64,000 bases of DNA from Mizuhopecten yessoensis (taxonomy: Eukaryota). Every line of letters begins with the position of its first letter. The first letter of the stretch is position 1. A program made the position numbers and the translations under genes. Under the pieces are notes generated by a model. That model was not told the DNA's origin, ran no database searches, and saw only the letters and a program-made list of their open reading frames with translations. The stretch lies in assembly GCF_002113885.1 (NCBI RefSeq), contig NW_018408705.1, forward strand, positions 334,000-397,999, read 5' to 3'. Positions 1,615 through 54,967 of the stretch are shown here, in pieces.

Positions 1615-1809
1615 ATGGTGTGGCTATACGTATCGGGGTGCTGTCTGTTGGCCTTTTTCGTGCCTACCTGGTGTAGTGACGATGCCAAAAGGCTATACCA
1701 CGATCTACTGGTGGAAAGACACTATAACAAACTCATCAGACCGGTCAGTAACAGTTCGGACAAACTTGTGGTCAAGATGGGCATACGACTCTCCCAGCTG
1801 ATAGACGTG
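1615..1809 (+). CDS. nAChR alpha coding exon 1 (signal peptide plus N-terminal helix, ending LSQLIDV)
   Basis: ATG at 1615 gives MVWLYVSGCCLLAFFVPTWCSDDAKRLYHDLL...YNKLIRPV...LSQLIDV. Donor GTG|GTAAGT at 1810, phase 0. Confidence 0.95.
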
Positions 1810-8373: not shown

Positions 8374-8782
8374 TCGTGTTGATTATGTCTCCGACGGATT
8401 TTGAGTGATAACATTATTCTCTGGATTGGTGCACATATACAAGTAAGGTATTTACATTGCAAGATGACCATGTGGCCCTAGTATTCTCATTTTGTGGCAT
8501 TTGCGTTGTTCTGATTGCATTTTGAGCGATTTTACCCTCGTCTGCCTTATTCGCCAGTAATACGTATATTATATATATACCCCATATCTACCTGGGTAGT
8601 GAGTAGGACAGCACCGAGTGACCATAGCCAAACTTTCGTCACGCTCTATTGACCAATGTTACCTTACCTGGAGATGTGCACGTGCCCGCTTGTGTCGGTG
8701 CTATTTTTAGCTCCGTGTACGACTTTGTGTTTATGTGTCGGGTGTCTACAGTAGGTGACAGCGGTCCGCTCTGTTCTACACC

Positions 8783-9853
8783 ATGGCCCCCAAAAAAACT
8801 GTCCCCACCAAGCATCAATCTACATCTAGCATTGTTAGTGAGGCACATAAAGTAATATATGAAGGTGTTTCAGAGGATTCCACGGCTGTTATGAAGCACA
8901 TGACTGAACTTTTTAATAGACTAGATACACGTCTTACCCACATTGAAAACCAAGTCATAAAGATTGATCAAGTCCAGAAGGATGTGACCTCGTTGACCTC
9001 TAAAGTCCATCAGTTAGATCATGAGGTGAAGAATATTGACGTTAAGTACAGGGAAATTCGCAATTCTGTGTCCAATGTTATCAGGCAGTCCAATGAAATG
9101 GAAAAGGGTGCCCAGGCCCTGAGTGATATGTATGACGATGTGAAGTCTTGTCTGGATCGAAACAACATTACTCTGGCCAATCTCAAAGCTGCTGATGACA
9201 AGAATGTAGTTGACACCACAAAAGTCATAGAAGAATTAACAGAGCTCCGTTCCGAGAGAACTAAGCTGAAGGATCTTGTCATAGACCTGCAATACAGGTC
9301 CATGAAGAACAACCTCATATTCCATGGACTACAAGGGGAAAATCCAGGGGAGGACACTGAGGCCAAACTGCGTGATTTCCTTTATTACGAGCTCGGGATT
9401 GACTCACACATAGATTTTGGGAATGTACATCGTTTTGGCAAGTTTGTGAACGGCAAGCATCGACCCATAGTGGCTAGATTTATTCACCACAAGGACCTAG
9501 AACTTGTTCGAGACAGTTCTTCGAAACTGAAGGGTTCTGGATTTTGGATCAACGAACAATTTCCAGCGGAAATCGAGGACAGACGTCGCAAGTTGTACCC
9601 TGTGCTTAAGCACTACAGAAGTGAAGGCTGTAGGGTTAAGTTGGTACGTGATCGGCTCTACGTTAATGGTAAGCTCTACCATGACGCCTCCTCGGAGGGC
9701 GTTACAGAGACAGTAGCTACATCTCGATCCACACAGAGAGAAGCTACCCAGCAGTCCTACCGTGATGCTTTGGACCGGACGCCGACTTCTGGTCAACGCC
9801 ATTCCAAGCGTCAACGTCGATTCACAGCTACGCCTACGCACTCGCCTACATAG
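8783..9853 (+). CDS. LINE ORF1p (coiled coil plus L1-ORF1/Transposase_22-like RRM and CTD), 356 aa
   Basis: Heptad-rich N-terminal half. Motifs DLQYRSMKNNLIFHGL, HRFG, RPIVARF, INEQFP..IEDRRRKL and DRLYVNG are typical of L1-type ORF1. Confidence 0.9.
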   Translation: MAPKKTVPTKHQSTSSIVSEAHKVIYEGVSEDSTAVMKHMTELFNRLDTRLTHIENQVIKIDQVQKDVTSLTSKVHQLDHEVKNIDVKYREIRNSVSNVIRQSNEMEKGAQALSDMYDDVKSCLDRNNITLANLKAADDKNVVDTTKVIEELTELRSERTKLKDLVIDLQYRSMKNNLIFHGLQGENPGEDTEAKLRDFLYYELGIDSHIDFGNVHRFGKFVNGKHRPIVARFIHHKDLELVRDSSSKLKGSGFWINEQFPAEIEDRRRKLYPVLKHYRSEGCRVKLVRDRLYVNGKLYHDASSEGVTETVATSRSTQREATQQSYRDALDRTPTSGQRHSKRQRRFTATPTHSPT

Positions 9854-9907
9854 GGGTGTCGGGGGGCAACAATCAACGACAGTACCAAGTGTGACCGGGC
9901 GAAACAT

Positions 9908-10767
9908 GTGTCTGATACCGATATCAGAATTATTTCCTGGAACGTAAATGGTGGAATAGAAAAAAAACTTAAAGTTACTGAATTCCGCAATGTTATACTT
10001 AACTATGATATTATTTTTTTATCCGAGTGCTGGATTCCAAAAGACTTTGAGGTAGACCTTGAGGACTTTCACGCAGTTGTTGTACCAAGGAAATTAACAC
10101 GCTGTACACAAGGTGGTGGATTGGTGTTACTAATACGTAATACTATTTTTAAATTTGTAAATGTAGGTAATGTTTTGTTTGATACAATTATACCGGTTAC
10201 TCTTGACCAGGATTTGACCAGTTGTACTGACAACCTAATACTGTTATTTACATATATTCCACCTAGTTCATCTCGTTTTTATGAACAATATGATTGTGAT
10301 ATTTTTTCAATTCTAGAAAACGTTATAAGTGAATATTCTGAATCCAGAAATGTAATGGTTATAGGTGATTTAAACAGTCGTACCCGTAATACAGATGATT
10401 TTATTTCATTCGACAATTTATATGGCGGTATACAGTCTCATATTGAATCCATTTTTAACTACTTAAGTGACACTGATGAAGAAAGGCTTCTGCCGATCAG
10501 AACAAACCCTGATCCAGGAGTCAACGAATTTGGTACAAGATTATTAAACCTATGTAAATCCTCGGGTCTAAGAATTTTAAATGGTAGAGACCTAGCCAAT
10601 CTATCTAGTGATTTTACTTTCTGTGGTGCAAATGGAATGAGTGTTATTGATTATGTATTAATGCCATTTAGTATGTTTTCTGTTGTTAAAAAATTCATGG
10701 TTTGCGAATTTGTTGAATTTTCCGACCATGCTCCATTGCACATTGAAATACACTGTAATTTAGGAGG

Positions 10768-10809
<42 letters not shown>

Positions 10810-13384
10810 GTATGATGATGACAATTCTAATGATAGACCTGTGTATAAATGGAAGGAGGAGTACCAACATCAATTTATCGAATCTGTAAGAGTTAATTTA
10901 GACTTAATAAAGAAATCAGTTTTAATCAATGATGAATTAAATCAATATTCTATTGATACCTGTGTAAGTAATTTTACTGATGTTTTACTAGGGACTATGA
11001 AACCATTTTTTCTAAGAAAACCGCCCAAAAATAACACTGATAAGCCCCCTGTTAAAGTTGACACCCACACCTTTTCTAGTTCCGAAGATAAGCCCTGGTT
11101 TAATGATCGTGTTAGAGCTCTACGTAAACAATATTTAGTTGCTTTAAAGAATTTCAACATTAACAAATGTTACTGGACACACACTCTTCTTATCCGTAAG
11201 AAAAAAGAGTACAAAATCCTGGAAAGTAAGTTTAAGAGGCAATATTTGAGCGCAGAAGGTGATATGTTGGAGTATATGAGAAAACATAACCCCGGGTCTT
11301 TTTATAAGAAATTTGGTAAGAAGAAAGCTAAAACACCAATGTGTAATGGTAATCAACTGTTCAATCATTTCAAAAACCTGTCTTCTGTACAACAAAATAA
11401 TGATCCAGTCCATCATGACGATTTTATTCTTACTGATTATGACACTGTTTTTGAGGAATTAGATGCTCCTATTTCGTTACAAGAAGTAAAAAATGCTATT
11501 CGGAAATTGAAATGTGGTAAATCACATGGACCTGATGGTTTGTTAAATGAATGTTTAAAAGCTGGCGTGGAATTACTTCTTCCAACTTTATCTACGTTGT
11601 TTAATTCTATACTAGAATCTGGTTATTTTCCTTCTAATTGGTCGTCAGCCATAATTATTCCTGTCCATAAGAAAGGTGTTTTAAATGACCCTAATAACTT
11701 TAGAGGTATCAGTTTAATTAGTTGTCTTTGTAAACTTTTTACCTCTGTACTAAATAAACGTATTTTAGATGTGTGTACAAAATATGACCTTATTACTGAT
11801 GCGCAATTCGGATTTCGTCCAGAACTTAGTACGATTGATGCAATTTTCGCATTACATTCTATTATAACGAAAACTTTATCTTCAAAGAAACGTTTGTACT
11901 GTTGCTTTGTGGACTTTCGCAAAGCGTTTGATTTTGTTGATAGATTAAGCTTATGGCGTAAGCTGACTAAGCTTGGTATTCGTGGGAAAATGTTATCCGT
12001 CATTAAATCATTTTACAAATCAGTTAAATCTTGTGTATCAACTAACGGTAAATGTTCTAATTATTTTGAGTGCAGTGTTGGATTAATGCAAGGGGAAATA
12101 TTATCGCCTTTATTGTTCTCAGTTTTTGTTAATGATTTTGAAACCTCATTTATTGAAAATGGTGCAACGGACTATGACTTTGGTGAATTAAGTTTGTTTT
12201 TGTTAATGTATGCAGATGACTTAGTATTGTTTTCCGAAACTATTGAAGGTTTACAGAGTCTTTTAGATAATCTGAATGTGTATTCTACTAAATGGAAATT
12301 AACAGTTAACACTGAGAAAACCAAAGTAGTTGTATTTAGAAACGGTGGTAGTATACGAGATAGAGAAAGATGGATGTATAATGGTTTGGAGGTGGAAGTT
12401 GTAGATGTTTTCAGCTACCTAGGAGTAAAACTGAAATTCAATAATAAATTTAATCATATACAGAAACAGTTATCTGACCAAGGAAGAAAGGCCATGTATG
12501 CTCTTTTTTCAAGCTCTTCTAACTTGAGCCTAAACTGTACAACGTTATTGCATTTATTTGATACGTATGTTTGTAGTATATTGCATTACGCATGTGAAGT
12601 ATGGGGATCTACAAAAGGTACGGATATTGAGAGGTTACACCTACACTTTTGTAAGAAGATTTTAAAAGTTAAGAAGTCGACTTGCAACGCAATGGTTTAT
12701 TTTGAATTAGGTCGACATCCTTTGGAAAATATAAGAAAATTCAGAATGATAAAATATTGGTTAAAACTAATGGATTCGAAAAATTGTATTTTGCAAACTG
12801 CGTATTCCTTTTTAAGTAGTAGCAATACAGGCAATTGCTTTAACTGGGTTAAGTATGTCAAACATTGTCTTTTTTCTCTCGGATTCGCAGATGTATGGAC
12901 AAATTATTATTCATATAACCATAAAAGTATTTTGTACATGATAAAGCAAAGAATATTTGATCAAAGTCAACAATATCTGAGAGGGCTATTAGAAACCTCA
13001 CCTAAATGTATTTTATATAAGCACTTAGCAAATCACCATACTCTTCAATACTATTTGACAAAGTATATTCCAATGAAATACCGGATCTGTTTATCTAAAC
13101 TTCGTCTTTCTGCACATAATTTAGCTATTGAGACTGGTAGATACAATAACATAACGAGAGAACAAAGACACTGTATGAGCTGCATTTCAGATATTGAAGA
13201 CGAATATCATTTTATTTTAATATGTAACAATTTTCATATTCTGAGAGTAAAATACATAAAACCATATTACTGGCGAAATCCTTCAATGTTTAAACTTGTA
13301 CAGTTACTAAGTGCTGATAATATCAGCGTTATTCGTAAACTTGCTAGATACATTTTTGAGGCAAATAAGGCACGAGTGACGTAA
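9908..13384 (+). CDS. LINE ORF2p: APE endonuclease, reverse transcriptase and C-terminal CCHC-type motif; no ATG at its start
   Basis: APE motifs SWNVNG, LSECW, GDLNSR, IDY, SDH. RT motifs NFRGISL, QFGFR, FVDFRKAFD, GLMQGEILSPLLF, YADD, YLG. Uninterrupted 1158 codons. Confidence 0.95.
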
Positions 13385-16423: not shown

Positions 16424-17330
16424 TTTTTAAGCTCACGAGGTCCACAGGACGGTAAACATAGGTCGTTGCGCTGCGATCGTTCAATTTAAAACGCTACTAG
16501 TCTTGAACGGCTCAGTGGACTTCGACTTAAATCCTTCCCCTCTTTCTATACGAATTAAGGGATGTAACCAAATTTTGTGCACAGCATCCTTGGGGAAAGG
16601 GGACTTAGTTTGTATAACGGTTGGTTGGTTCCCCTTTTGAAGCAGAGGGACGTAGTCCAATAAGGGAATCCAGAAGTACAGGTAAATCTTTCAAAATCCT
16701 CCTTCCCCTGTAGTGATTGAGTGAATTTAAACCAGATTAGATCATCCTTGGACGAATGGGACTAAATGTTTTATAAACGTAGAATGTGTCCAATCCCTCA
16801 TCCCTCCAACCCTACCCACACACTGAAGGCAGAGAGGCGGGGGCAAATAGGGGAAACATAATAAAATCTTTTAATCCTTCTCCTTCCATAAAAATGAAGG
16901 TTTTNNNNNNNNNNNNNNNNNNNNNNNNNNNNNNNNNNNNNNNNNNNNNNNNNNNNNNNNNNNNNNNNNNNNNNNNNNNNNNNNNNNNNNNNNNNNNNNN
17001 NNNNNNNNNNNNNNNNNNNNNNNNNNNNNNNNNNNNNNNNNNNNNNNNNNNNNNNNNNNNNNNNNNNNNNNNNNNNNNNNNNNNNNNNNNNNNNNNNNNN
17101 NNNNNNNNNNNNNNNNNNNNNNNNNNNNNNNNNNNNNNNNNNNNNNNNNNNNNNNNNNNNNNNNNNNNNNNNNNNNNNNNNNNNNNCCCCCCACCCCCCC
17201 GAGGGGTCCGCTAGGAAAAGTATGTCATGACTTGGAAACATTTGAGATCTCCACCTACCAACATACATACTGATTACAATTGCTAGGCATGAAGACACGA
17301 ATACATGCTATTAAGATTGGCACTGGGTTT
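16424..17330 (+). mobile_element. Degenerate HINE-like element spanning the assembly gap
   Basis: 5' box ttttaagctcac, followed by imperfect internal repeats (aaatccttc.cct...; catccttgg). Confidence 0.4.
16905..17186. other. Assembly gap (282 N)
   Basis: Run of N. Confidence 1.
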
Positions 17331-27984: not shown

Positions 27985-28029
27985 GACGAGAAAAACCAAA
28001 TTATGACTACAAACGTCTGGCTTCGTCAG
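27985..28029 (+). CDS. nAChR alpha coding exon 2 (45 nt, loop D: DEKNQIMTTNVWLRQ)
   Basis: Acceptor ttttattgttttgcag| and donor CAG|GTAAGG. This is the canonical 45-nt nAChR exon. Confidence 0.96.
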
Positions 28030-33548: not shown

Positions 33549-34862
33549 TAACGCACGTAACAACTCTTGCAAATTAAAGCTTCTAGCAGTCTTCGCTTGG
33601 GAGAAAACAGAGACATGTTTATTATAACAGACTTGTTTGAAATCATTGGTATCGAGGAGTTGTCACTATACACAGGTTGTCAGAACCGCCACTGAATGTG
33701 GAAATTTCTATATCTAGCTGCCTAATAAGTAATTGCCATATATATATAGTATATGCACACAGTGCTTAACGTTGAACATATATTCTTGCAAAAGATATAT
33801 AATATAATGTATTATTAAATATATAGTGGGACCTTGTTATACTGCCAGAGTTTATCTAGCGAAATGTTGACGTCATAAAGAAGCAAAATTGAAATAGTAG
33901 TAAAAACTAACTATTTGAAAAGGAAAAGAGGACCATGAAATGTGTTGACAGTAAGCGAGGTGTTAAATCGATTGAGGGGCGAAACATCGAGGTTTTACTG
34001 TATATATAAGTGTATGCACATATACCCTCGTTTTCGAGCTGACCGTTAGAATAAGATATCGCACGTGGGCAAGCCATACAATACAAACTATTCTAACTTA
34101 CAGGTTTTGGCTATACAATGTATTGCTTTACTGCTTTGGTGTGACGTCACTTTGTCCGGCCCTTATTGTTGTTTACCACACATCTCTTGATTTGGCAGTT
34201 TTCCTACCAATTCCCAGGCCATTCATGCTTAGTTTACAATGGCGACTTTTCACCCAAGACGACCATCATTCCGTACAAAAGTGTGTTCATGTCCAAAAGT
34301 TCGCTTTGATATAAAGATCACTGCGATTTAAAATCAATAATTGTTTTTGCTTCTGATCAGGACACAGCCAATCCACATAGTTCGACTAATGAGGAATTTT
34401 ACTTGAAAAACATTAAACCACGTACGTGCTACCGGTGTGTCGGTGGTACTCGATGACGTCACATTATGACGAAAGGCGATGAAGGGGGTAAACAATTTCG
34501 GATTTGTTCTTTCTTTATGTACAGGAGTGAACTGAATTTGTCCCGTCGACAGAATCTTGATGAAATGTGGTCATTGTGATATTGGAACAGACCTCTTTAT
34601 TAAGACAAATATCGCTCTTTACACACACTTATTTATGCAAATTGTATTATCCATAAGAAGAAAGTCAGGTGTTCTAATCCAAAAATAAAAGTTTCTGCAA
34701 AACGATGTCCATTCTAAAGAGGTTATACTGTAGCCTGCAAGGTGATGGGTAACTTAATTCCTAAAACGATCCCGTGTTTCTGCCTTTCTGTGTGGGGGAC
34801 AGACACAATGACGTCACGGCTTACCTAACCCGCTTTGTCCTCTCTCTCACCCTACTAACCAG

Positions 34863-34972
34863 GAATGGTATGACTACAAATTGAGCTGGCAGAAGGCAGA
34901 GTATGGAGGGGTGGACCGACTCTACGTCCCCTCAAAACAAATATGGCTACCGGACATCGTACTTTACAATAA
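34863..34972 (+). CDS. nAChR alpha exon 3a (110 nt; [36 protein letters not shown]), alternative
   Basis: Pyrimidine tract plus ccag| acceptor and AA|GTAGGT donor, phase 0 to 2, loop A motif WLPDIVLYN. Not in the ORF track. Confidence 0.95.
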
Positions 34973-35771
34973 GTAGGTAGAGGTTGGTACTGGTCAATGT
35001 AGTGGTCAGCATGCTAGTTCTCCAATATGTCGCACGGACACATTATCGTGATCAGACTAAATACGCCTTTACATGACAAACTCTTTCTGTTCTGCAAATG
35101 TACAAAGTAAATCCGTTAAACATGTGTATGTTTTCAAGCAAAACAATGCAATATGACCATGCTGTAATGGAACAAAATCTGTAAAGCATGTCAGTCGCCA
35201 AACCACAATAATAGTCCGCGGGTATTGGAGGATATATATGTCGTGGGTACTGACGACATCGGGACCATCCAGGAGTCAGGTAATGAAGAAAATCCAAAGA
35301 GGACATAACTAACGATTTTCCTTTTTTTATTCTACGTATTTTTGTATGTAAATTTCAATTTAGATTGAACATTCATGACATTTTGAAAATACAAACAGTA
35401 GCGTGATGTCGATCCTTTTGAACTGTGCCAGGCCATGGCTTGGTCCGGTGCCTGTTGAGTCGTTAGCCCTGTTATAAAGGTAAGACACCAAGGGTAAACC
35501 ATCACTCATAACATATCCCGTCAACGCTTTGTTTTTTGTGTGGGCCTTTGGTTTCTGTTATCTAAGAATAATAAACTAACATAGAACGGTACGGAACGGA
35601 AGCAGCGAGGCCAGGTTACCGTACGTATTCTACTGCGCACTCTGTCCTCTCCTGGTCTTCTCACTTCCTGCATTAGACGAGCATGCGCATGGGGCGTGGA
35701 ACAGGTCTGTACTAACACTGGGAAGCTCGTGTTTTACAAACTGACTTGGTTTAATTATTTGTTTCTGAAAG

Positions 35772-35881
35772 TGGTGGTTTGACGCCAGCTTGGTTTGGAA
35801 CCCGGCCGAATATGCCAACATCACCAAACTGGAGGTACCTTCCCCCAAAATATGGACGCCCGACATTGTCCTCTTTAACAA
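35772..35881 (+). CDS. nAChR alpha exon 3b (110 nt; WWFDASLVWNPAEYANITKLEVPSPKIWTPDIVLFN), alternative paralogue of 3a
   Basis: Acceptor tttgtttctgaaag| and donor AA|GTAAGT. Same length and phase as 3a, open frame, and colinear with 3a without gaps. Confidence 0.9.
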
Positions 35882-37096
35882 GTAAGTACGCATGTACTGG
35901 AAGTTTGGACTTTTTCTTTCTTATTTATGTCCGTTCGTTAATGTACTGTATGATCATTTTATTTACTTTTCATCAGCTCGTGTCATTGATTATAATGAAA
36001 AAGAAATGTAAATGTTAATAATGTGTTACATATATCGAAGAGATCTAAAAAGTGATGATTTTGATTGTCATAACCTTATAACATTATATATAAATCATCA
36101 GCATCCATTTTTCGAGTGTAATATTTTGGCATGGTTGTTCAAAAGGTGATTAGTTAAGTAGATAGTGTAATTTTTGTTTTTCTTGTATCTTTAAAAAAAA
36201 AAAGCATCACTTGATTTTAAATTTTACAGACAGTTAAGATATTACCAATGTAAGTTATATCCAAAATTACAAGTTTTACAAGTTCATAGACGGATTTATT
36301 AGATGTTGAAAATGTCGTTAAACAATTATTAAGCTAATCACCTAAAAAAACCAGCTGGATCATGGTTTCTCCAATTGACAGAAAAATATCGTATCCGTGT
36401 TATTAATGGAATCTAAAGCCGTTATGGAGAATACTCGTTATACAATGATAATGGTCAACACTGACCATCTCTGGACCTACTGTGAATGTGCGTGCATTTA
36501 TAAAGTACATGTGTTTATATGACGTACTTACATGTATATAATGTGTTTAATATTTCTTTATTTTCCTTTACATGTTTAAGCAATGTCATGTCATATATTT
36601 CACCATGAACACACTTTTCATGATTTCACATCGAGTGCTTGTTTTAGCTATTTGATACAGAGACATACTAGATTCACGGTTAATGTTTATATAATGACTT
36701 ATATTGGCAATGAATTTACTACAGATTTTTTGATCGAATGATTACATGGAATTTTATTTTGTTTCAATTGTTTCACGTATAGTATGTGAAGTGCACATGA
36801 CATTTCATTGTAGCATTTTTCTTTTGAAGGATTGCAGTGACTGTCACGTTTAACAACACTTAAAGCACGTGACGCCCCGTGCGTTGAATAAATGTCGGAC
36901 TTGCTTTTCAGACAAACTATTCCTAAGCGAGGGATAGTCGAGAGCATATTGGAATACACAAAGCAATTACTCTCCAAAATGTCTTTTTTCTTCCCACGCC
37001 AAAATTTAATTTGGATTGATACACATCCTGTTTTATTAGAAAGTGAGTAGTATATACAGTACATAGGGTACGTCACCAATGATCCATCCTTGTTTA

Positions 37097-38199: not shown

Positions 38200-39770
38200 T
38201 CTTAAATATCTTAGAGGCCCTCAACCTGTACATGTACCATCTAAATACCTCACAGGCCCTCAACCTGTACATGTACCATCTAAATATCTTACAGACCCTC
38301 AACCTGTACATGTACCATCTAAATGTCTTGCAAACCCTCAACCTGTACATGTACCATCTAAATATCTTAGACGCCCTCAACCTGTACATGTACCATCTAA
38401 ATATCTTAGAGGCCCTCAACATGTACATGTACCATCTAAATACCTCACAGGCCCTCAACCTGAACATGTACCATTTAAATATCTAAGAGGCCCTCAACCT
38501 GTACATGGACCATCTAAATATCTTAGCGGCCCTCAACCTGTACATGTACCATCTAAATACCTCACAGGCCCTCAACCTGTACATGTACCATCTAAATACC
38601 TTACAGACCCTCAACCTGTACATGTACCATCTAAATACCTCACAGACCCTCAACCTGTACATGTACCATCTAAATACCTCACAGGCCCTCAACCTGTACA
38701 TGTACCATCTAAATACCTTACAGACCCTCAACCTGTACATGTACCATCTAAATACCTCACAGGCCTACAACCTGTACATGTACCATCTAAATATCTTACA
38801 GACCCTGTACATGTACCATCTAAATATCTTACAGACCCTGTACATGTACCATCTAAATACCTTACATGCCCTCAACCTGGTCATGTACCATCTAAATATC
38901 TTACAGGCCCTCAACCTGTACATGTACCATCTAAATACCTTACAGGCCCTCAACCTGGTCATGTACCATCTAAATATCTTACAGGCCCTCAACCTGTACA
39001 TGTACCATCTAAATATCTTACAGACCCTGTACATGTACCATCTAAATATCTTACAGGCCCTGTACATGTACCATCTAAATACCTTACAGGCCCTCAACCT
39101 GGTCATGTACCATCTAAATATCTTACAGGCCCTTAACCTGTATATGTACCATCTAAATACCTTACAGGCCCTCAACCTGGTCATGTACCATCTAAATATC
39201 TTGCAGGCCCTCAACCTGTACATGTACCATCTAAATATATTAGAGGCCCTCAACTTGTACATGTACCATCTTAATATCTTACAGACCCTCAACCTGTACA
39301 TGTACATGTACCATCTAAATATCTTACCGACCCTCATCCTGTACATGTACCATCTAAATATCTTAGAGGCCCTCAACTTATACATGCACCATCTAAATAC
39401 CTCAAAGGCCCTCAACCTGTACGTGTAAATGTACCATCTAATATATGACAGACCCTCATCCTGTACATGTACCATCTTAATATCTTACAGACCCTCAAGA
39501 TGTACTTCTAAATATCTTACAGACCCTCAACCTGTACATGTACCATCTCAATATCTTACAGGTCATCAACCTGTACATGTTCCATCTCAATATCTTACAG
39601 GCCCTCAACCTGTACATGTACCATCTAAATATGTTAGAGGCCCTCAACTTGTACATGTACCATCTAAATACCTCACAGACCCTCAACCTGTACATGTACC
39701 ATCTAAATATCTTACAGGCCATCAACCTGTACATGTTCCATCTAAATATCTTACAGACCCTTAACCTATA
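38200..39770. repeat. 39-bp minisatellite (about 40 copies, with some 33-bp deletion variants) in intron 3
   Basis: Unit aggccctcaacctgtacatgtaccatctaaatatcttac. Confidence 0.97.
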
Positions 39771-40579: not shown

Positions 40580-41579
40580 TGCTGACGGCCACTACGAAGT
40601 GACCTTGATGACAAAGGCCACATTACACCCAAACGGTAAAGTTGTTTGGGAGCCTCCTGCAATCTACAAGTCGTCGTGTCAGATAGACGTGGAGTTCTTC
40701 CCCTTTGATATCCAGCAGTGCAGCATGAAGTTCGGGTCGTGGACGTACGACGGCGATCAGGTCGACATCATCCACATGTGCTCAGACGAAGCCATGGACC
40801 GGAAGTTGATTGCAGAGGGTATTGACCTGCGAGATTTCTACCCGAGCGTAGAATGGGACATCCTTGAAGGGACCGCCCGGAAGAACGTCCGCCATTATCC
40901 CTGCTGTCCCGAGCCGTATCCAGATATCACATTTAACATCACAATGAGGCGGAAGACTCTGTTCCACACAGTCAACCTTATCATCCCATGTGTCTCAATC
41001 TCATTCCTAACTGTCCTAGTGTTCTATTTACCCTCAGACAGCGGAGAGAAAATTACTCTGTGTATCTCCATTTTGCTCTCGCTTACTGTATTTTTCCTGC
41101 TGTTGGCGGAGATAATTCCGCCTACCTCCATAGTGGTGCCCCTGATCGGCAAATACCTCCTCTTCACCATGATCCTGGTTACCTTGTCCATCCTTGTCAC
41201 CGTCATAGTCCTCAACGTTCACTTCCGGTCTCCCTCCACACACACCATGTCGCCATGGGTGCGAAGGGTGTTCCTCAACATACTTCCACGACTGTTGATC
41301 ATGCGTAGACCTACCACTGACCGGGAGGGAACGCAGTCACGTGTTACTGTAAGAACTTGGAACGGGGTGGAAATACGAAATTCCTACCCAGATCATATAT
41401 GTAACACGATAGACGGGGAGGACATACGGTTCATCCGCCATGGACTAGAGGAACTAGTTGCTGCAGCGGAGACAGATTCCTGCCATAGGAGAAAACCGGT
41501 CCCGTTGGAGATACAAAACGCTGTGGATAGCGTTTTCTTCATTGCTGAGCATTTAAAGTCAGAGGACCAGGAAAATTCA
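40580..41579 (+). CDS. nAChR alpha coding exon 4 (1000 nt; loop E, Cys-loop, loops B/F/C, M1-M3, cytoplasmic loop, MA helix)
   Basis: Acceptor acctttcag|T completes the AA-T Asn codon and continues [13 protein letters not shown]...[12 protein letters not shown]. Donor TCA|GTAAGT at 41580. Confidence 0.96.
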
Positions 41580-44080
41580 GTAAGTACATTCCAATTAGCC
41601 TGCTTGAAAAACGGGTTATTCCCAATTTACTTCGACAAGGAAAAGTATTTAACCGAATATAAACGAATTTCGCGCACGAATTTCCTCAATAAAACGATAC
41701 TCAAAGAAAATATCTAAGATTTCTCTATATGTTTTCTTGAGGTTATATTAAACCTGTATCACGTGCAGAATGTGTAAATTATCAAAAAAACGTCCGTTTG
41801 ATTACAGCCAAGTACATATAAAAACACAGAAATATGTTAATGATGTACATAACGCATTCCAGTATAACATGCGCCTGGCTCACGGTATACGCGTGATTTA
41901 CGTCTATCTATATTATGATCGAATAAAAACTTAACGCAGTTCAAGTGCTATACATCTGTTTACTAATGGTGTGATATATCACATTAAAGAGATTGCAGAA
42001 GTATATAAGTACACTTTGTAAAATGAACGGATCTAGCATGGTCACCCGCACTCTTGTGTGTTAATGTGATGTTAAGCGTTCGTGTGCTGCGGTTTTGTGA
42101 CAGTGCTGTGTGTAATTGGCGCGCGTGACATCGCACATTGTCTAGCAATTCTATTTCCCTTTCTTCAACTTCTAATCGATTTCTTAAAATTGAAGAGGAA
42201 AACGACTTTGAGGATAAATATCCCTTTTCAATCGGACTCCCGTCCAAGTCAGTCGATCCACGTTTTATTTATATTCATCCTGCATCCCGCCAATTGTCAG
42301 CTAATGGAGCATTTCATTTTTTGCATTTGTTTTTTTTTCTATCGTTGAACCATTGAAATTGAACAAAAATTGATTTAGTGCAAGTCCGTTGGGTTAAAGT
42401 ACTCGGTTAATCTATTTGTAGGACAAATACAATTTCTCAAGCAGGTACATTGTACGCATGCGCGGTATTTAGATATCCGGTGTAGGTTCAGAATCTGTTG
42501 AATAATTCAAAGAAAAAGGCCACTCCACATAACAAATATTTCTTTTAGAGCTTTATGCATGGTTTCTGTTATTGTAGTTCTATGATAAAACTATTACCGG
42601 CTATGTTTTATACGACATTTATCGGTATAGGGTTCAGTAACGACATGGTAGAGCAATAAGTATAACGCTTAGCAATATTCACATCGCCATTGGTTTCAAC
42701 GTCTTTCTAAATCATGTCCAACTCAATTGTCTTTGTAAGTCCGGATGTGGGCAGGCTAAATATAACTAACCACCGAGCATTACACAAACGACATATTCTG
42801 AAATTTGATGTTTTACAAACAAATATAAATCATCTTTATTTAAACAAATTTATGGACGTTTTGAAATAAACAACATTGCAGTTCTTATCTGAAGCGTTTA
42901 ATCTACGAATGTTTAGAATGATTGCATGGCAGCCATACTGGAGTAAAGAGTGGATGTATAGTGGACGTACTTTAGAACTGGTTAACCAAATATGGCTTGG
43001 TACTTTAATACAACAGCTAGGTGAGGGGCGTGTATTTAACAGATTCGGTTTTAAAGCATGTTGAGCGCGTGTTTCGTGCTGAATTGTTAAACCACCAAAT
43101 CAATGCTTTCCCACTTTTTGTCTTATCTTTAAATGTTTAATGCATGTATATTCCCTACGAGGTATATCGGATCACTCAAGAATCCATACTTGCAGTAATT
43201 TCTTCCACTCCCTAATAATCTGTAGCGTATATAAGTTTGTTTTATTTCATAATCCATATTAGGTCTTTATTTAAATATTTTTGGTCGGGTGATTCATCAC
43301 TGAAAAAATCTCAAAAGGATTGGTACATCTAAAAAGCAAACATGTACAAATGTGCATGCGTATTTGTGATGAACGTCGCGATAAATTCAAATGACGGCAT
43401 GAGCGCGAGGCCAACTTGATGACTGTTCTAAGATACGTCGATCAGTTTCCTGGATTATAACAGAGATACATCATTTTGTTGGATTAGACGCGCCCCTTAA
43501 CCTAGTCAGCTCCAATATAGCATGTAACAATTTGTTTTCGTGTTTTCGTCTGTGGAAAATGTTTGGAAATATTGAAGAAATTAGTTCGTCAAATTTACAT
43601 ACAGTCAATTTAAGTAAGCCGTCAAGTAAACAAGTTACAAAATCACGCCTTTCTTTTATGAATGCTATTAACTGATTATTGTCGTCATTTTTATTATGAC
43701 GTCATAATTGTAACGTTGGATACCACTGTCCCTCTCTGGATAGATGGCAGTATTGCTCATTGAACAAGCGTATAAGAGTAATTCGATTAATTTTAACAAA
43801 ATACTAAAAAATATTACGAGTGACTGATTTTCTATGAGATAAACAGATTCCGGAAATTTTAAATCTAAACATTTACATTTTCTAGCACGCTTCATTGAAT
43901 TTGCTTTTATCCAGTTTGCATTTATATAGCCTATGAATGCTAACTGAAAGCAGTTCAATACTTTAAAAATACACAAAAATACTCGTACTGCTCTACACAA
44001 CTTTAAAAATCATTATAAAATTTACTTATTTACTTAATATCCTTATCTAATATGTGTCGCTCCTATTGTCCATTAAACAG

Positions 44081-48644: not shown

Positions 48645-48960
48645 AACTAAGGAGACACCAAAAAGGGGAACTGATGAGACAACTAAACAATCTGAAAATA
48701 CACCAAAACACCGGGACTGATGAGACACCAAAACAACCGGAACTCGGGAGACTCCAAAACATGCGGGAACGATGAGACACCAACATAGTAAACACCAAAA
48801 CAACATGAACATGGTAAACACCAAAACAACATGAACTTGGGAGACATCAAAACAACAGGAACTTCGGAGACACCAAAACAATAGGAACTGGAGAGACACC
48901 AAAACAACAGGAACTGGGGAGACACCTAAACAACAGGAACTTAGGAGACACCAAAACAAA
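48645..48960. repeat. Degenerate tandem repeat of about 26 bp
   Basis: Recurrent gagacaccaaaacaacaggaact. Confidence 0.85.
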
Positions 48961-52819: not shown

Positions 52820-53600
52820 AGTGTGACGTGGGCTGATGTCACATGTGGTCGTGTCACGTGGCACGCTAGTGTCAACGATTAGTCGTGTGTGCTGATGTAA
52901 GATGTGCTGGTATAACGTGCGATCGTGCCACTTGTACAAGTGTGCTATATGGCACATGCGTTGTTATCACGTATGGTCTTGTCAAATGCGCAAGTGTCGC
53001 GTGTGACAGTGTCATGTGTGCTGGTGTAGCGTGTGCTGGTATCACGTGTGATTATTTCACGTGTGCTAGCGTAATATGTTGGTGTCACGTCTGCAATTGT
53101 CATTTGTTATTATCACGCGTGTTGTGTCACATGTGCTGTTGTCAAGTGAAGTCGTGTCACGTAAACTGGTGTGAAATATATTGGTGTCACAAGTGCAGGT
53201 ATCTCTGGAGGTCGTTCCACGTGCGTTTGTGTCACATTTGGTGTTTCGCATGTGTAAGTGTCGCGTGTGTTGTGTCACACGTGCTTCTCTCACGTGTGCT
53301 AGCGTCGTGCGTTAGAATCAATTGTGCTGGTGTTGCCAGTTTTGATGGTGTCACGTTCGGTCGTGTCGCATGTGCTGGAATCACGTGCGTTAGTTTTACA
53401 CGTGCTGGTGTCCAACAAGTGTATGTACCACGTAGAGTCATGCTGTATGCAGTGATGTCACGTGTATTAATGTCGCTTGCTCTCGTGCCTCGTGTCACAT
53501 TCGTTGGTGTCCCATGTAATGTGACACTTACGATTGTTGCACGTGTACCACGTCACGCCTGCTTGTGGTTCATGTGCCATGTGGGGTCATATCACGTGTG
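52820..53600. repeat. Low-complexity GTGTCACGTGTGCTG-type degenerate repeat
   Basis: Dense gtcac/cacgtg/gtgctggt motifs. Confidence 0.8.
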
Positions 53601-54967
53601 TTGGTAGTTTACTCCGGAACTTTAAAACGGAATAACCTATGCATTGTGTCAGACAAATTATTATCAAATATTAGTCATATTTATGCAACCACACCATTTG
53701 GCATCAAAACTATATATCAGAAAAAAAGTTTTGTAATCAAAGAAAATGTCATCTTTATACGCCATAACAATTTGAGCCTAGATAATGGAATGGAGGAGAC
53801 AACGTTTTCTTCAAAATTATTACCTGTAACAACAAAATAAACACACATATACAGTAGAACTGTTTCAGTTCTAGCAGTAGTTTCTAGAGCGTATCTCGAC
53901 TACGTGTCCTGAAGTAACATTGTACTAATTACCTCTGTTCTGTCCTGTACAAAACAACCTCACTACAACTCAAACCTAATTGTAAACATGTATTGAAAAG
54001 CACCTGTGGATATCATCGCATCAGGAAGTCCGTTCCAGGGGACGAATCAGTGTGCATATTTACAGACAGTGGTTATCGGTTCAGATCAATAACTCGAGCA
54101 ACGCTGCTCGGAGAAAGGGGGACAAATCTGCCGGAAGGGGTGTGATTTAGAGCCTGTTTATTAAGACGGATAGCTTCTCTAGTTGAGTATGGCACTAGGG
54201 GGCAAGCCTAGGCGGGTACTCCCCCTTCTAAATGTCACATAGACAGCATATACTGTCCCGTAAAAGATAGAGAGTCCAACCACTTTTCCACTTTATATAA
54301 AAATAGAAAATATTTATCTTCATATTAAAATCATACCATGACCGGTAAAGGTTGCAGACCATTTAAAAACAGATTTGCTCTTTATTGAAGATAACACTAC
54401 ATAGAGCTTTGTCTTTCCACCTCAAAAGTTACAAAGTACTTTCGCCTACTACACTTCACTACAATGCAATGAACTTCCCCTTTTCATTGTTAAGTAAACA
54501 TTAGGCAATGCCCCCTTTTTACTTTTTATTCTATATCAAGCACCGTCCCATTCAGTATTACCCCCATCCTATCTTAATATCAACATTGGCCCTTAATGAT
54601 TTCAAATATCGACTGACCGTAATACAGTATAAAAAACAAATCGATATCATCTAAACACTATACTGCGCCCTTCTCAACATTATTTACACGTTAATAGTCC
54701 CCTCTAAACATTAATTACACGTTAATTGTACCTTCTAAACATTAATTAAAGGCCAGACACTGCTCCTTGTAAATGTTAATTAAATTGTAAATTATGTAGC
54801 TCTCTAAACGTTAAAAGTCTGCGATCGTCTAAACTGATCTTCAAAACCAGGTACATGTGCGTATCCACATCTATACGGTAATTCACCATATATTTTACCA
54901 GTGGTCGATGATATTTCAACAAGTAAACTTATGGATCCCCGTACCACAGCCAAAAAAACGGAAGCTG

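Follow-up and report, generated by a model that had tools for sequence, protein, structure and literature searches.

The window analysed here, a stretch of 64,000 nt on the forward strand of contig NW_018408705.1, comes from the Yesso scallop, Mizuhopecten yessoensis, as shown by exact comparison: every exon peptide in the window is identical to the RefSeq proteins of this species, and the peptide of exon 1 equals residues 1-65 of both XP_021371672 and XP_021371673. The window carries a nicotinic acetylcholine receptor (nAChR) alpha gene, the parts of which are given below with their positions in the window.

1615..1809, + strand: exon 1, with the start codon, the signal peptide and the start of the ligand-binding domain (LBD); 65 codons, ending in phase 0; matches Pfam Neur_chan_LBD
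27985..28029, + strand: exon 2, the 45-nt loop-D exon of 15 codons; counterpart of insect alpha6 exon 3
34863..34972, + strand: exon 3a, the 110-nt exon of ancestral type; residues 81-116 of RefSeq isoform X2
34973..35771, + strand: intron between 3a and 3b, 799 nt
35772..35881, + strand: exon 3b, the 110-nt exon of derived type; residues 81-116 of RefSeq isoform X1
40580..41579, + strand: exon 4, the remaining LBD (Cys loop and YPCC loop C), TM1-TM3 and the greater part of the cytoplasmic loop
44081..44248, + strand: exon 5, with TM4, the C-terminus and the stop codon; matches the RefSeq proteins

When spliced with one 110-nt exon, the model consists of 505 codons and a stop, whichever of 3a and 3b is chosen. 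The encoded protein has the domain order of an nAChR alpha subunit, Neur_chan_LBD followed by Neur_chan_memb; exons 1, 3a and 3b match PF02931, and exon 4 matches both PF02931 (E 2.9e-36) and PF02932 (E 6.8e-61). Furthermore, exon 4 encodes the Cys loop, with its two cysteines 13 residues apart, and the vicinal Cys-Cys of alpha-type subunits within YPCCPEPY. Scallop proteins were the first matches when exon 4 was used as the query of a protein search, and the subunit belongs to the alpha-like 1 / beta-like 2 group. The window contains two copies of the 110-nt exon and one of the 45-nt exon, the same numbers as at every locus examined; neither a third 110-nt copy nor a second 45-nt exon was found in the window or in the six other loci searched.

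Several repeats and one gap were also observed in the window. Intron 1 contains a run of 282 N (16905-17186) and a LINE-type retrotransposon (8759-13381, + strand) that lies in the sense of the gene and consists of a 364-codon open reading frame followed by an intact one of 1,176 codons, the latter encoding Exo_endo_phos endonuclease and RVT_1 reverse transcriptase domains; this element appears young or perhaps active. The intron between 3b and exon 4 contains a 39-nt minisatellite (38203-39767; 40.6 copies, 86% match), which gives rise to spurious long open reading frames on both strands. A 26-nt tandem repeat of 6.5 copies (48792-48959) is found downstream of the gene, and a 245-codon open reading frame at 52870-53604 (+ strand), rich in Cys, Val and Ala, resembles a low-complexity repeat.

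Either 110-nt exon alone keeps the reading frame open

An earlier note, made from the letters of the window alone, had described two open 110-nt exons, 799 nt apart and both running from phase 0 to phase 2 between AG and GT sites, and all of these features were confirmed. Exon 3a is bordered by the consensus acceptor cag|GAATGG and the donor AA|gtaggt, and exon 3b by the acceptor aag|TGGTGG and the consensus donor AA|gtaagt. The two copies align without gaps and are strongly diverged, as the note had also said, with 19 of 36 residues and 62 of 110 nucleotides (56% of the DNA) identical. Each peptide alone matches the Pfam Neur_chan_LBD profile, 3a at profile positions 56-91 (E 7.8e-13) and 3b at positions 57-91 (E 6.7e-11); because both match the same stretch of the profile, their likeness is far beyond chance. 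The exons are therefore neighbouring homologues of equal length and phase, each with its own splice sites, as in a mutually exclusive pair.

The consequences for the frame that the note had listed were borne out by a codon walk across the exons. Inclusion of both exons leads to a TGA at 40600-40602, and skipping of both leads directly to TGC TGA, with the stop at 40583-40585; with either exon alone, the frame stays open through exon 4 and reaches 505 codons. Since the exon length of 110 nt is not divisible by 3, inclusion of both exons or of neither shifts the frame and brings an early stop in exon 4, and both of these stops are upstream of the last exon junction, 41579/44081.

Both isoforms are annotated, and exon 3b is used in transcripts

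It had been expected that automated annotation would probably miss the switch. This proved wrong for RefSeq, in which XP_021371672 (X1) contains 3b and XP_021371673 (X2) contains 3a, so that the pair is not an unannotated feature; however, the expectation held in part for two other annotations. The model of the genome authors, OWF41618, contains 3a only, and in KAJ8305004 of Tegillarca granosa (137 aa) a block of each type is present, with a spurious linker of 20 residues between them. The locus can thus be flagged as error-prone for some annotation pipelines, which yield one isoform only or both exons fused.

Equal-length pairs of RefSeq proteins that differ only in the 36-residue block of the 110-nt exon were found in Pecten maximus, Argopecten irradians, Ostrea edulis, three Haliotis species, Patella vulgata, Pomacea canaliculata, Biomphalaria glabrata, two Octopus species and the nemertean Lineus longissimus. 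The Octopus pairs, seen as proteins, have clear a and b blocks and differ in the block only. The RefSeq sets of Ylistrum, Saccostrea, Mytilus and Mya contain the b form alone. In Aplysia, the cDNA-derived proteins AAL78648 and AAL78649, named "alpha 1" and "alpha 2" and also present as RefSeq NP_ records, show 18 differences within the block and 4 outside it; these two proteins are splice forms of a single gene, a relationship that is explained by the switch.

Transcripts were also found among assembled RNA-seq contigs. A Logan contig of 2,094 nt (SRR19746227) has an unbroken 505-codon frame identical to Argopecten isoform X1 and reproduces exons 1, 2 and 3b of the Argopecten genome without a mismatch, with junctions at 449/450 and 559/560 (exon 2|3b|exon 4); no 20-mer of 3a is shared with this contig. 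Because the contig splices exon 2 to 3b exactly, it validates the non-consensus AAG acceptor of 3b. An oyster mRNA contig of 1,758 nt encodes a full-length b-type protein. One exon per transcript was found in the Argopecten contig (3b only), the oyster contig (b only), the Aplysia proteins and all RefSeq pairs. These data show that 3b is used in real transcripts; for Mizuhopecten, its use rests on the RefSeq model and the Argopecten transcript. Taken together, we consider it highly likely, with a probability of about 0.85, that this Yesso scallop nAChR alpha gene carries its 110-nt loop-A exon as the tandem copies 3a and 3b and that exactly one of them enters each mRNA.

The two exons encode different versions of the agonist site

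The 36-residue block aligns to residues 59-94 of the Torpedo alpha subunit, a segment that we take, from the structure of muscle alpha1, to comprise the end of beta2, the loop equivalent to the MIR (residues 67-76), beta3 and loop A. Position 35 of the block corresponds to Torpedo alpha Tyr93 and is Tyr in 15 of 15 a exons and Phe in 14 of 18 b exons; the four b exons that retain Tyr are those of Patella, Mytilus, Arion and Bradybaena, and for this reason the change of Tyr to Phe is not the sole point of the switch. At position 21, in beta3, the a form has Tyr and the b forms have Glu, Leu or Gln (Glu in scallop 3b), and position 29, next to Trp86, is also changed in the b form. Furthermore, scallop 3b, but not 3a, contains an N-I-T glycosylation sequon (35817-35825). 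A sequon is found at nearly the same place in the b exons of Mytilus (N-L-S) and Dreissena (N-I-S), and none is found in those of gastropods and octopus.

Five aromatic residues make up the core of the agonist site, and alphaY93 is among them (PMC4621750); in the mouse muscle receptor, its mutation to Phe (alphaY93F) reduces the equilibrium constant of diliganded gating from 45 to 0.7 (PMC2525745, Table II). Because exon 3b alters the loop-A Tyr, the beta3 Tyr and the surface loop, and adds a sequon in scallops, the two isoforms probably differ in their response to agonist, and perhaps in assembly; the expected effect of the Tyr-to-Phe change is extrapolated from the vertebrate muscle receptor.

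Frame incompatibility would probably enforce the use of one exon

Transcripts that include both exons or neither would probably be removed by nonsense-mediated decay, since each of their stops precedes the last exon junction by about 1 kb, a position at which this pathway classically acts. Exclusivity would then probably be enforced by the incompatibility of the frames rather than by steric hindrance or RNA pairing, and steric hindrance is disfavoured because the intron between 3a and 3b is 799 nt long. The choice between the exons is probably regulated at the acceptor of 3b. This proposal is made because an asymmetry of the acceptors is conserved across six mollusc loci (Mizuhopecten, Pecten, Argopecten, Ostrea, Haliotis and Pomacea): the acceptor of exon b is AAG with a shorter pyrimidine run in all six, and that of exon a is CAG or TAG. 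The weak acceptor of 3b suggests that 3a is the default exon; however, the b-only RefSeq sets of several bivalves point otherwise.

Among the three scallops, 28% of the alignment columns of the intron between 3a and 3b are invariant, a few conserved islands aside. The following two elements, next to 3b, are conserved in these species.

35663..35721, + strand: conserved island upstream of 3b, with GCATGCGCATG and the branch-site consensus TACTAAC about 55 nt before the acceptor
35882..35905, + strand: conserved element immediately downstream of the 3b donor; GCATG occupies intron positions +9 to +13

Exon choice in scallops could instead depend on Rbfox-type (U)GCAUG elements, or on pairing of the conserved islands around 3b. 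The presence of GCATGCGCATG some 90 nt before exon 3b and of GCATG at +9 downstream, both invariant within a mostly variable intron, is in keeping with such control, as is the clustering of GCATG, for which the probability of two or more occurrences in 90 nt is 0.0036 at a background of 0.97 per kb. However, the GCATG motifs do not occur at the corresponding positions of Ostrea, Haliotis and Pomacea, so that they leave the ancient switch unexplained; in addition, these putative Rbfox sites do not have the 5' U that marks the best site. No consistent complementarity between the conserved islands was found in the three scallops either, the duplex energies ranging from z = -2.2 to +1.7 against shuffled sequences and disagreeing among the species. 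We therefore consider control of this kind unlikely, even within scallops. As a general mechanism, GCATG was rejected because its conservation is limited to scallops, where it would be a lineage-specific feature at most. Regulation at the 3b acceptor, combined with probable loss of the out-of-frame products, remains the preferred model.

A perfect branch-site consensus, TACTAAC, was also observed beside exon 3a (within 34852-34862), ending 4 nt before the acceptor AG; Pecten retains it, and Argopecten differs from it by one change. This motif is not a working branch point, because it is too close to the acceptor, and a conserved CCTAAC about 32 nt upstream is more likely to be the branch site of 3a.

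The exon pair probably predates the split of the mollusc classes

In all six mollusc loci named above, exon a precedes exon b, each is 110 nt long and bordered by AG and GT, and the gap between them is 629-1,363 nt. A tree was built from 49 blocks over 36 columns. All 18 b blocks from molluscs group together as a single clade with a long stem (support 91/95), and the a blocks fall among blocks from annelids, brachiopods, nemerteans and arthropods that are present in one copy; the a form is of the ancestral type and the b form is derived. Because the b exons form one clade, the tree argues for a single duplication before the classes separated, and the switch is probably older than the divergence of bivalves, gastropods and cephalopods, which took place over 500 million years ago.

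Alternatively, the exon could have been duplicated independently in bivalves, gastropods and cephalopods, with the b exons alike through fast evolution or convergent selection. Mean identity between b exons (21.0/36) is barely greater than that between a and b exons (20.2/36), and long-branch attraction or convergent selection among the b exons may shape a tree of 36 columns. Furthermore, constraints that made a and b sisters in a single lineage were not rejected (AU p-values of about 0.22), in a test of low power on 36 columns. However, independent duplication in the three classes, constrained jointly, was rejected (delta lnL 35.2, p-AU 0.0024), and the well-supported b clade with its long stem also speaks against it. 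The b exons moreover have derived states in common at block positions 6, 17, 21, 29 and 35, and all mollusc loci agree in the order and spacing of the exons and in the AAG acceptor. Independent duplication is thus improbable, and a single event before the class split is preferred.

A tandem pair of 110-nt exons was also observed at the same position of the gene in the nemertean Lineus longissimus (42301-42410 and 42873-42982 of the Lineus locus, 462 nt apart). Its copies share 28 of 36 residues and 73 of 110 bases, and both acceptors are YAG. This pair is far less diverged than that of molluscs and possibly arose separately, which would lend some weight to repeated duplication of the exon; by its sequence, it may have originated either in a duplication of its own or in the ancient event that gave rise to the mollusc pair.

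Outside molluscs, the b signature was absent from the hemichordate, nematomorph and priapulid matches of a region search (11 candidates), and the clusters of arthropod, tardigrade and annelid relatives each contain one a-like block and no second block. A profile search for b-type exons outside molluscs returned mostly exon-sized fragments. A Logan contig of 1,066 nt (194 aa) was also observed to contain two near-identical blocks resembling insect beta1 (...YQLQWDEADYGGI...), 20 codons apart in one frame; these paired blocks could represent another tandem duplication of the 110-nt exon or an assembly artefact.

Both exons are under strong purifying selection

The orthologous loci of Pecten and Argopecten were compared with that of Mizuhopecten. 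The dN/dS values, a check that the earlier note had proposed, were 0.02-0.03 for 3a and 0.009-0.025 for 3b in these three scallops, and 0.005-0.018 for exon 4. Each pair of scallops differs in 3a by 7-9 synonymous changes and 1 nonsynonymous change, and in 3b by 10-14 synonymous and 1-2 nonsynonymous changes. Neither copy is disrupted, both are spliced canonically, and strong purifying selection acts on each as it does on constitutive exons; maintenance by selection is seen both in the low dN/dS of the two copies and in their conservation in six mollusc loci. It was also observed that dS among the scallops is lower in 3a (0.40-0.59, from small counts of 7-9) than in 3b (0.67-1.30) and exon 4 (0.87-1.42). 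This low value hints that 3a may be under an extra constraint at the RNA level, for example from splicing enhancers.

Exon 3b could be read as a dead or decaying duplicate, a pseudo-exon without use, given its non-consensus AAG acceptor, a pyrimidine tract poorer than that of 3a and its omission from OWF41618. However, its dN/dS and the 10-14 synonymous changes per scallop pair are not those of a decaying sequence, and the absent or disrupted 3b orthologue that the note had set out as grounds for refutation was not encountered, the frame being open and the splice sites kept in all six mollusc loci. The exact splicing of 3b in the Argopecten contig, the b-only RefSeq models and b-type mRNA contigs of several species, and the b form in an Aplysia cDNA likewise testify to its use. 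On the strength of the dN/dS values, the conservation in six loci and the Argopecten splicing, this reading was ruled out as very improbable. A misassembly or recent segmental duplication, for which the assembly gap elsewhere in the gene (in intron 1) could be cited, is less probable still and was dismissed, because the copies are only 56% identical in DNA with saturated synonymous sites and because the same ordered pair recurs in seven independent assemblies from seven genera.

Altogether, the shared pair, the b clade, the low dN/dS and the transcripts support the proposal of the earlier note that the pair acts as an ancient splice switch of the ligand-binding domain, kept by selection.

Discussion

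The tandem copies of the loop-A exon in the scallop gene may be the result of one duplication in the molluscan stem, or an earlier one if the nemertean pair goes back to the same event. Under this broader proposal, the pair would have been kept since before the class split and would toggle loop A between Tyr and Phe, and beta3 between Tyr and Glu, to give two pharmacologically distinct subunits throughout the phylum. We regard the proposal in this full form as tentative, at a little short of even odds. If it is true, the switch would be the loop-A counterpart of the loop-D switch of insects, and one gene would provide two subunits across the phylum.

The sequences themselves are already public as RefSeq isoforms, and what appears to be undescribed is the nature of the pair, its age and the loop-A toggle between Tyr and Phe. 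In the full text of the open-access papers and preprints searched, no account was found of exon switching at loop A in a nicotinic receptor of any kind, or of the mollusc switch. The "mutually exclusive" exons mentioned in the Lymnaea genome paper were set aside, as they concern FMRFamide and not an nAChR gene. Mollusc nicotinic receptor families are very large, and surveys of these families count genes and overlook isoforms; a 2019 survey of lophotrochozoan receptors, for instance, never mentions isoforms. The present data indicate that a conserved, intron-bearing "core" subunit also diversifies, through an ancient exon switch at the agonist site. The difference between Tyr and Phe in loop A, moreover, offers a clean natural experiment in a receptor from a non-model animal.

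Insects reach a similar outcome through different exons. The earlier note had mentioned that insect alpha4 and alpha6 subunits use mutually exclusive exons other than this 110-nt exon, and the literature agrees, placing those exons at loop D and the Cys loop (PMC5111602, PMC2045683, PMC8505678). In insect alpha6, exons 3a and 3b are versions of the 45-bp loop-D exon (PMC5111602), and exons 8a-c cover TM2 (PMC8505678); in insect alpha4, exons 4 and 4' are at the Cys loop (PMC2045683; PMC8505678).

The scallop pair resembles exons 3a and 3b of insect alpha6 in being formed by tandem homologous LBD exons of a nicotinic receptor gene, one of which is used per transcript, and the copies are a comparable distance apart, namely 899 bp in alpha6 of Tuta absoluta (PMC5111602) and 799 nt in the scallop. 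However, the duplicated exon of insects is the 45-bp loop-D exon, whereas in the scallop the counterpart of that exon, exon 2, is present in a single copy and the next exon, of 110 nt, is duplicated. The 45-bp exon of alpha6 is also frame-neutral, so that transcripts with both copies or neither stay in frame, and such transcripts have been observed (PMC2045683, PMC5111602); in the scallop, both of these outcomes lead to a stop. Furthermore, insect alpha6 belongs to the alpha7-like clade (PMC8505678), in contrast to the scallop gene with its alpha-like 1 / beta-like 2 grouping.

The RefSeq isoforms X1 and X2 and the Aplysia entries AAL78648 and AAL78649 represent the same feature as the scallop pair, and these entries carry no interpretation; the names of the Aplysia entries suggest two separate subunits. 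Exons 4 and 4' of insect alpha4 are similar to the scallop exons in that they form an ancient alternative pair in the extracellular domain of a subunit that is not of the alpha7 type, and the alpha4 pair has been reported to affect the efficiency of assembly (PMC2045683). The insect pair, however, is near the Cys loop, whereas the Cys loop of the scallop subunit is encoded by the single-copy exon 4 and the scallop pair covers the segment from beta2 to loop A.
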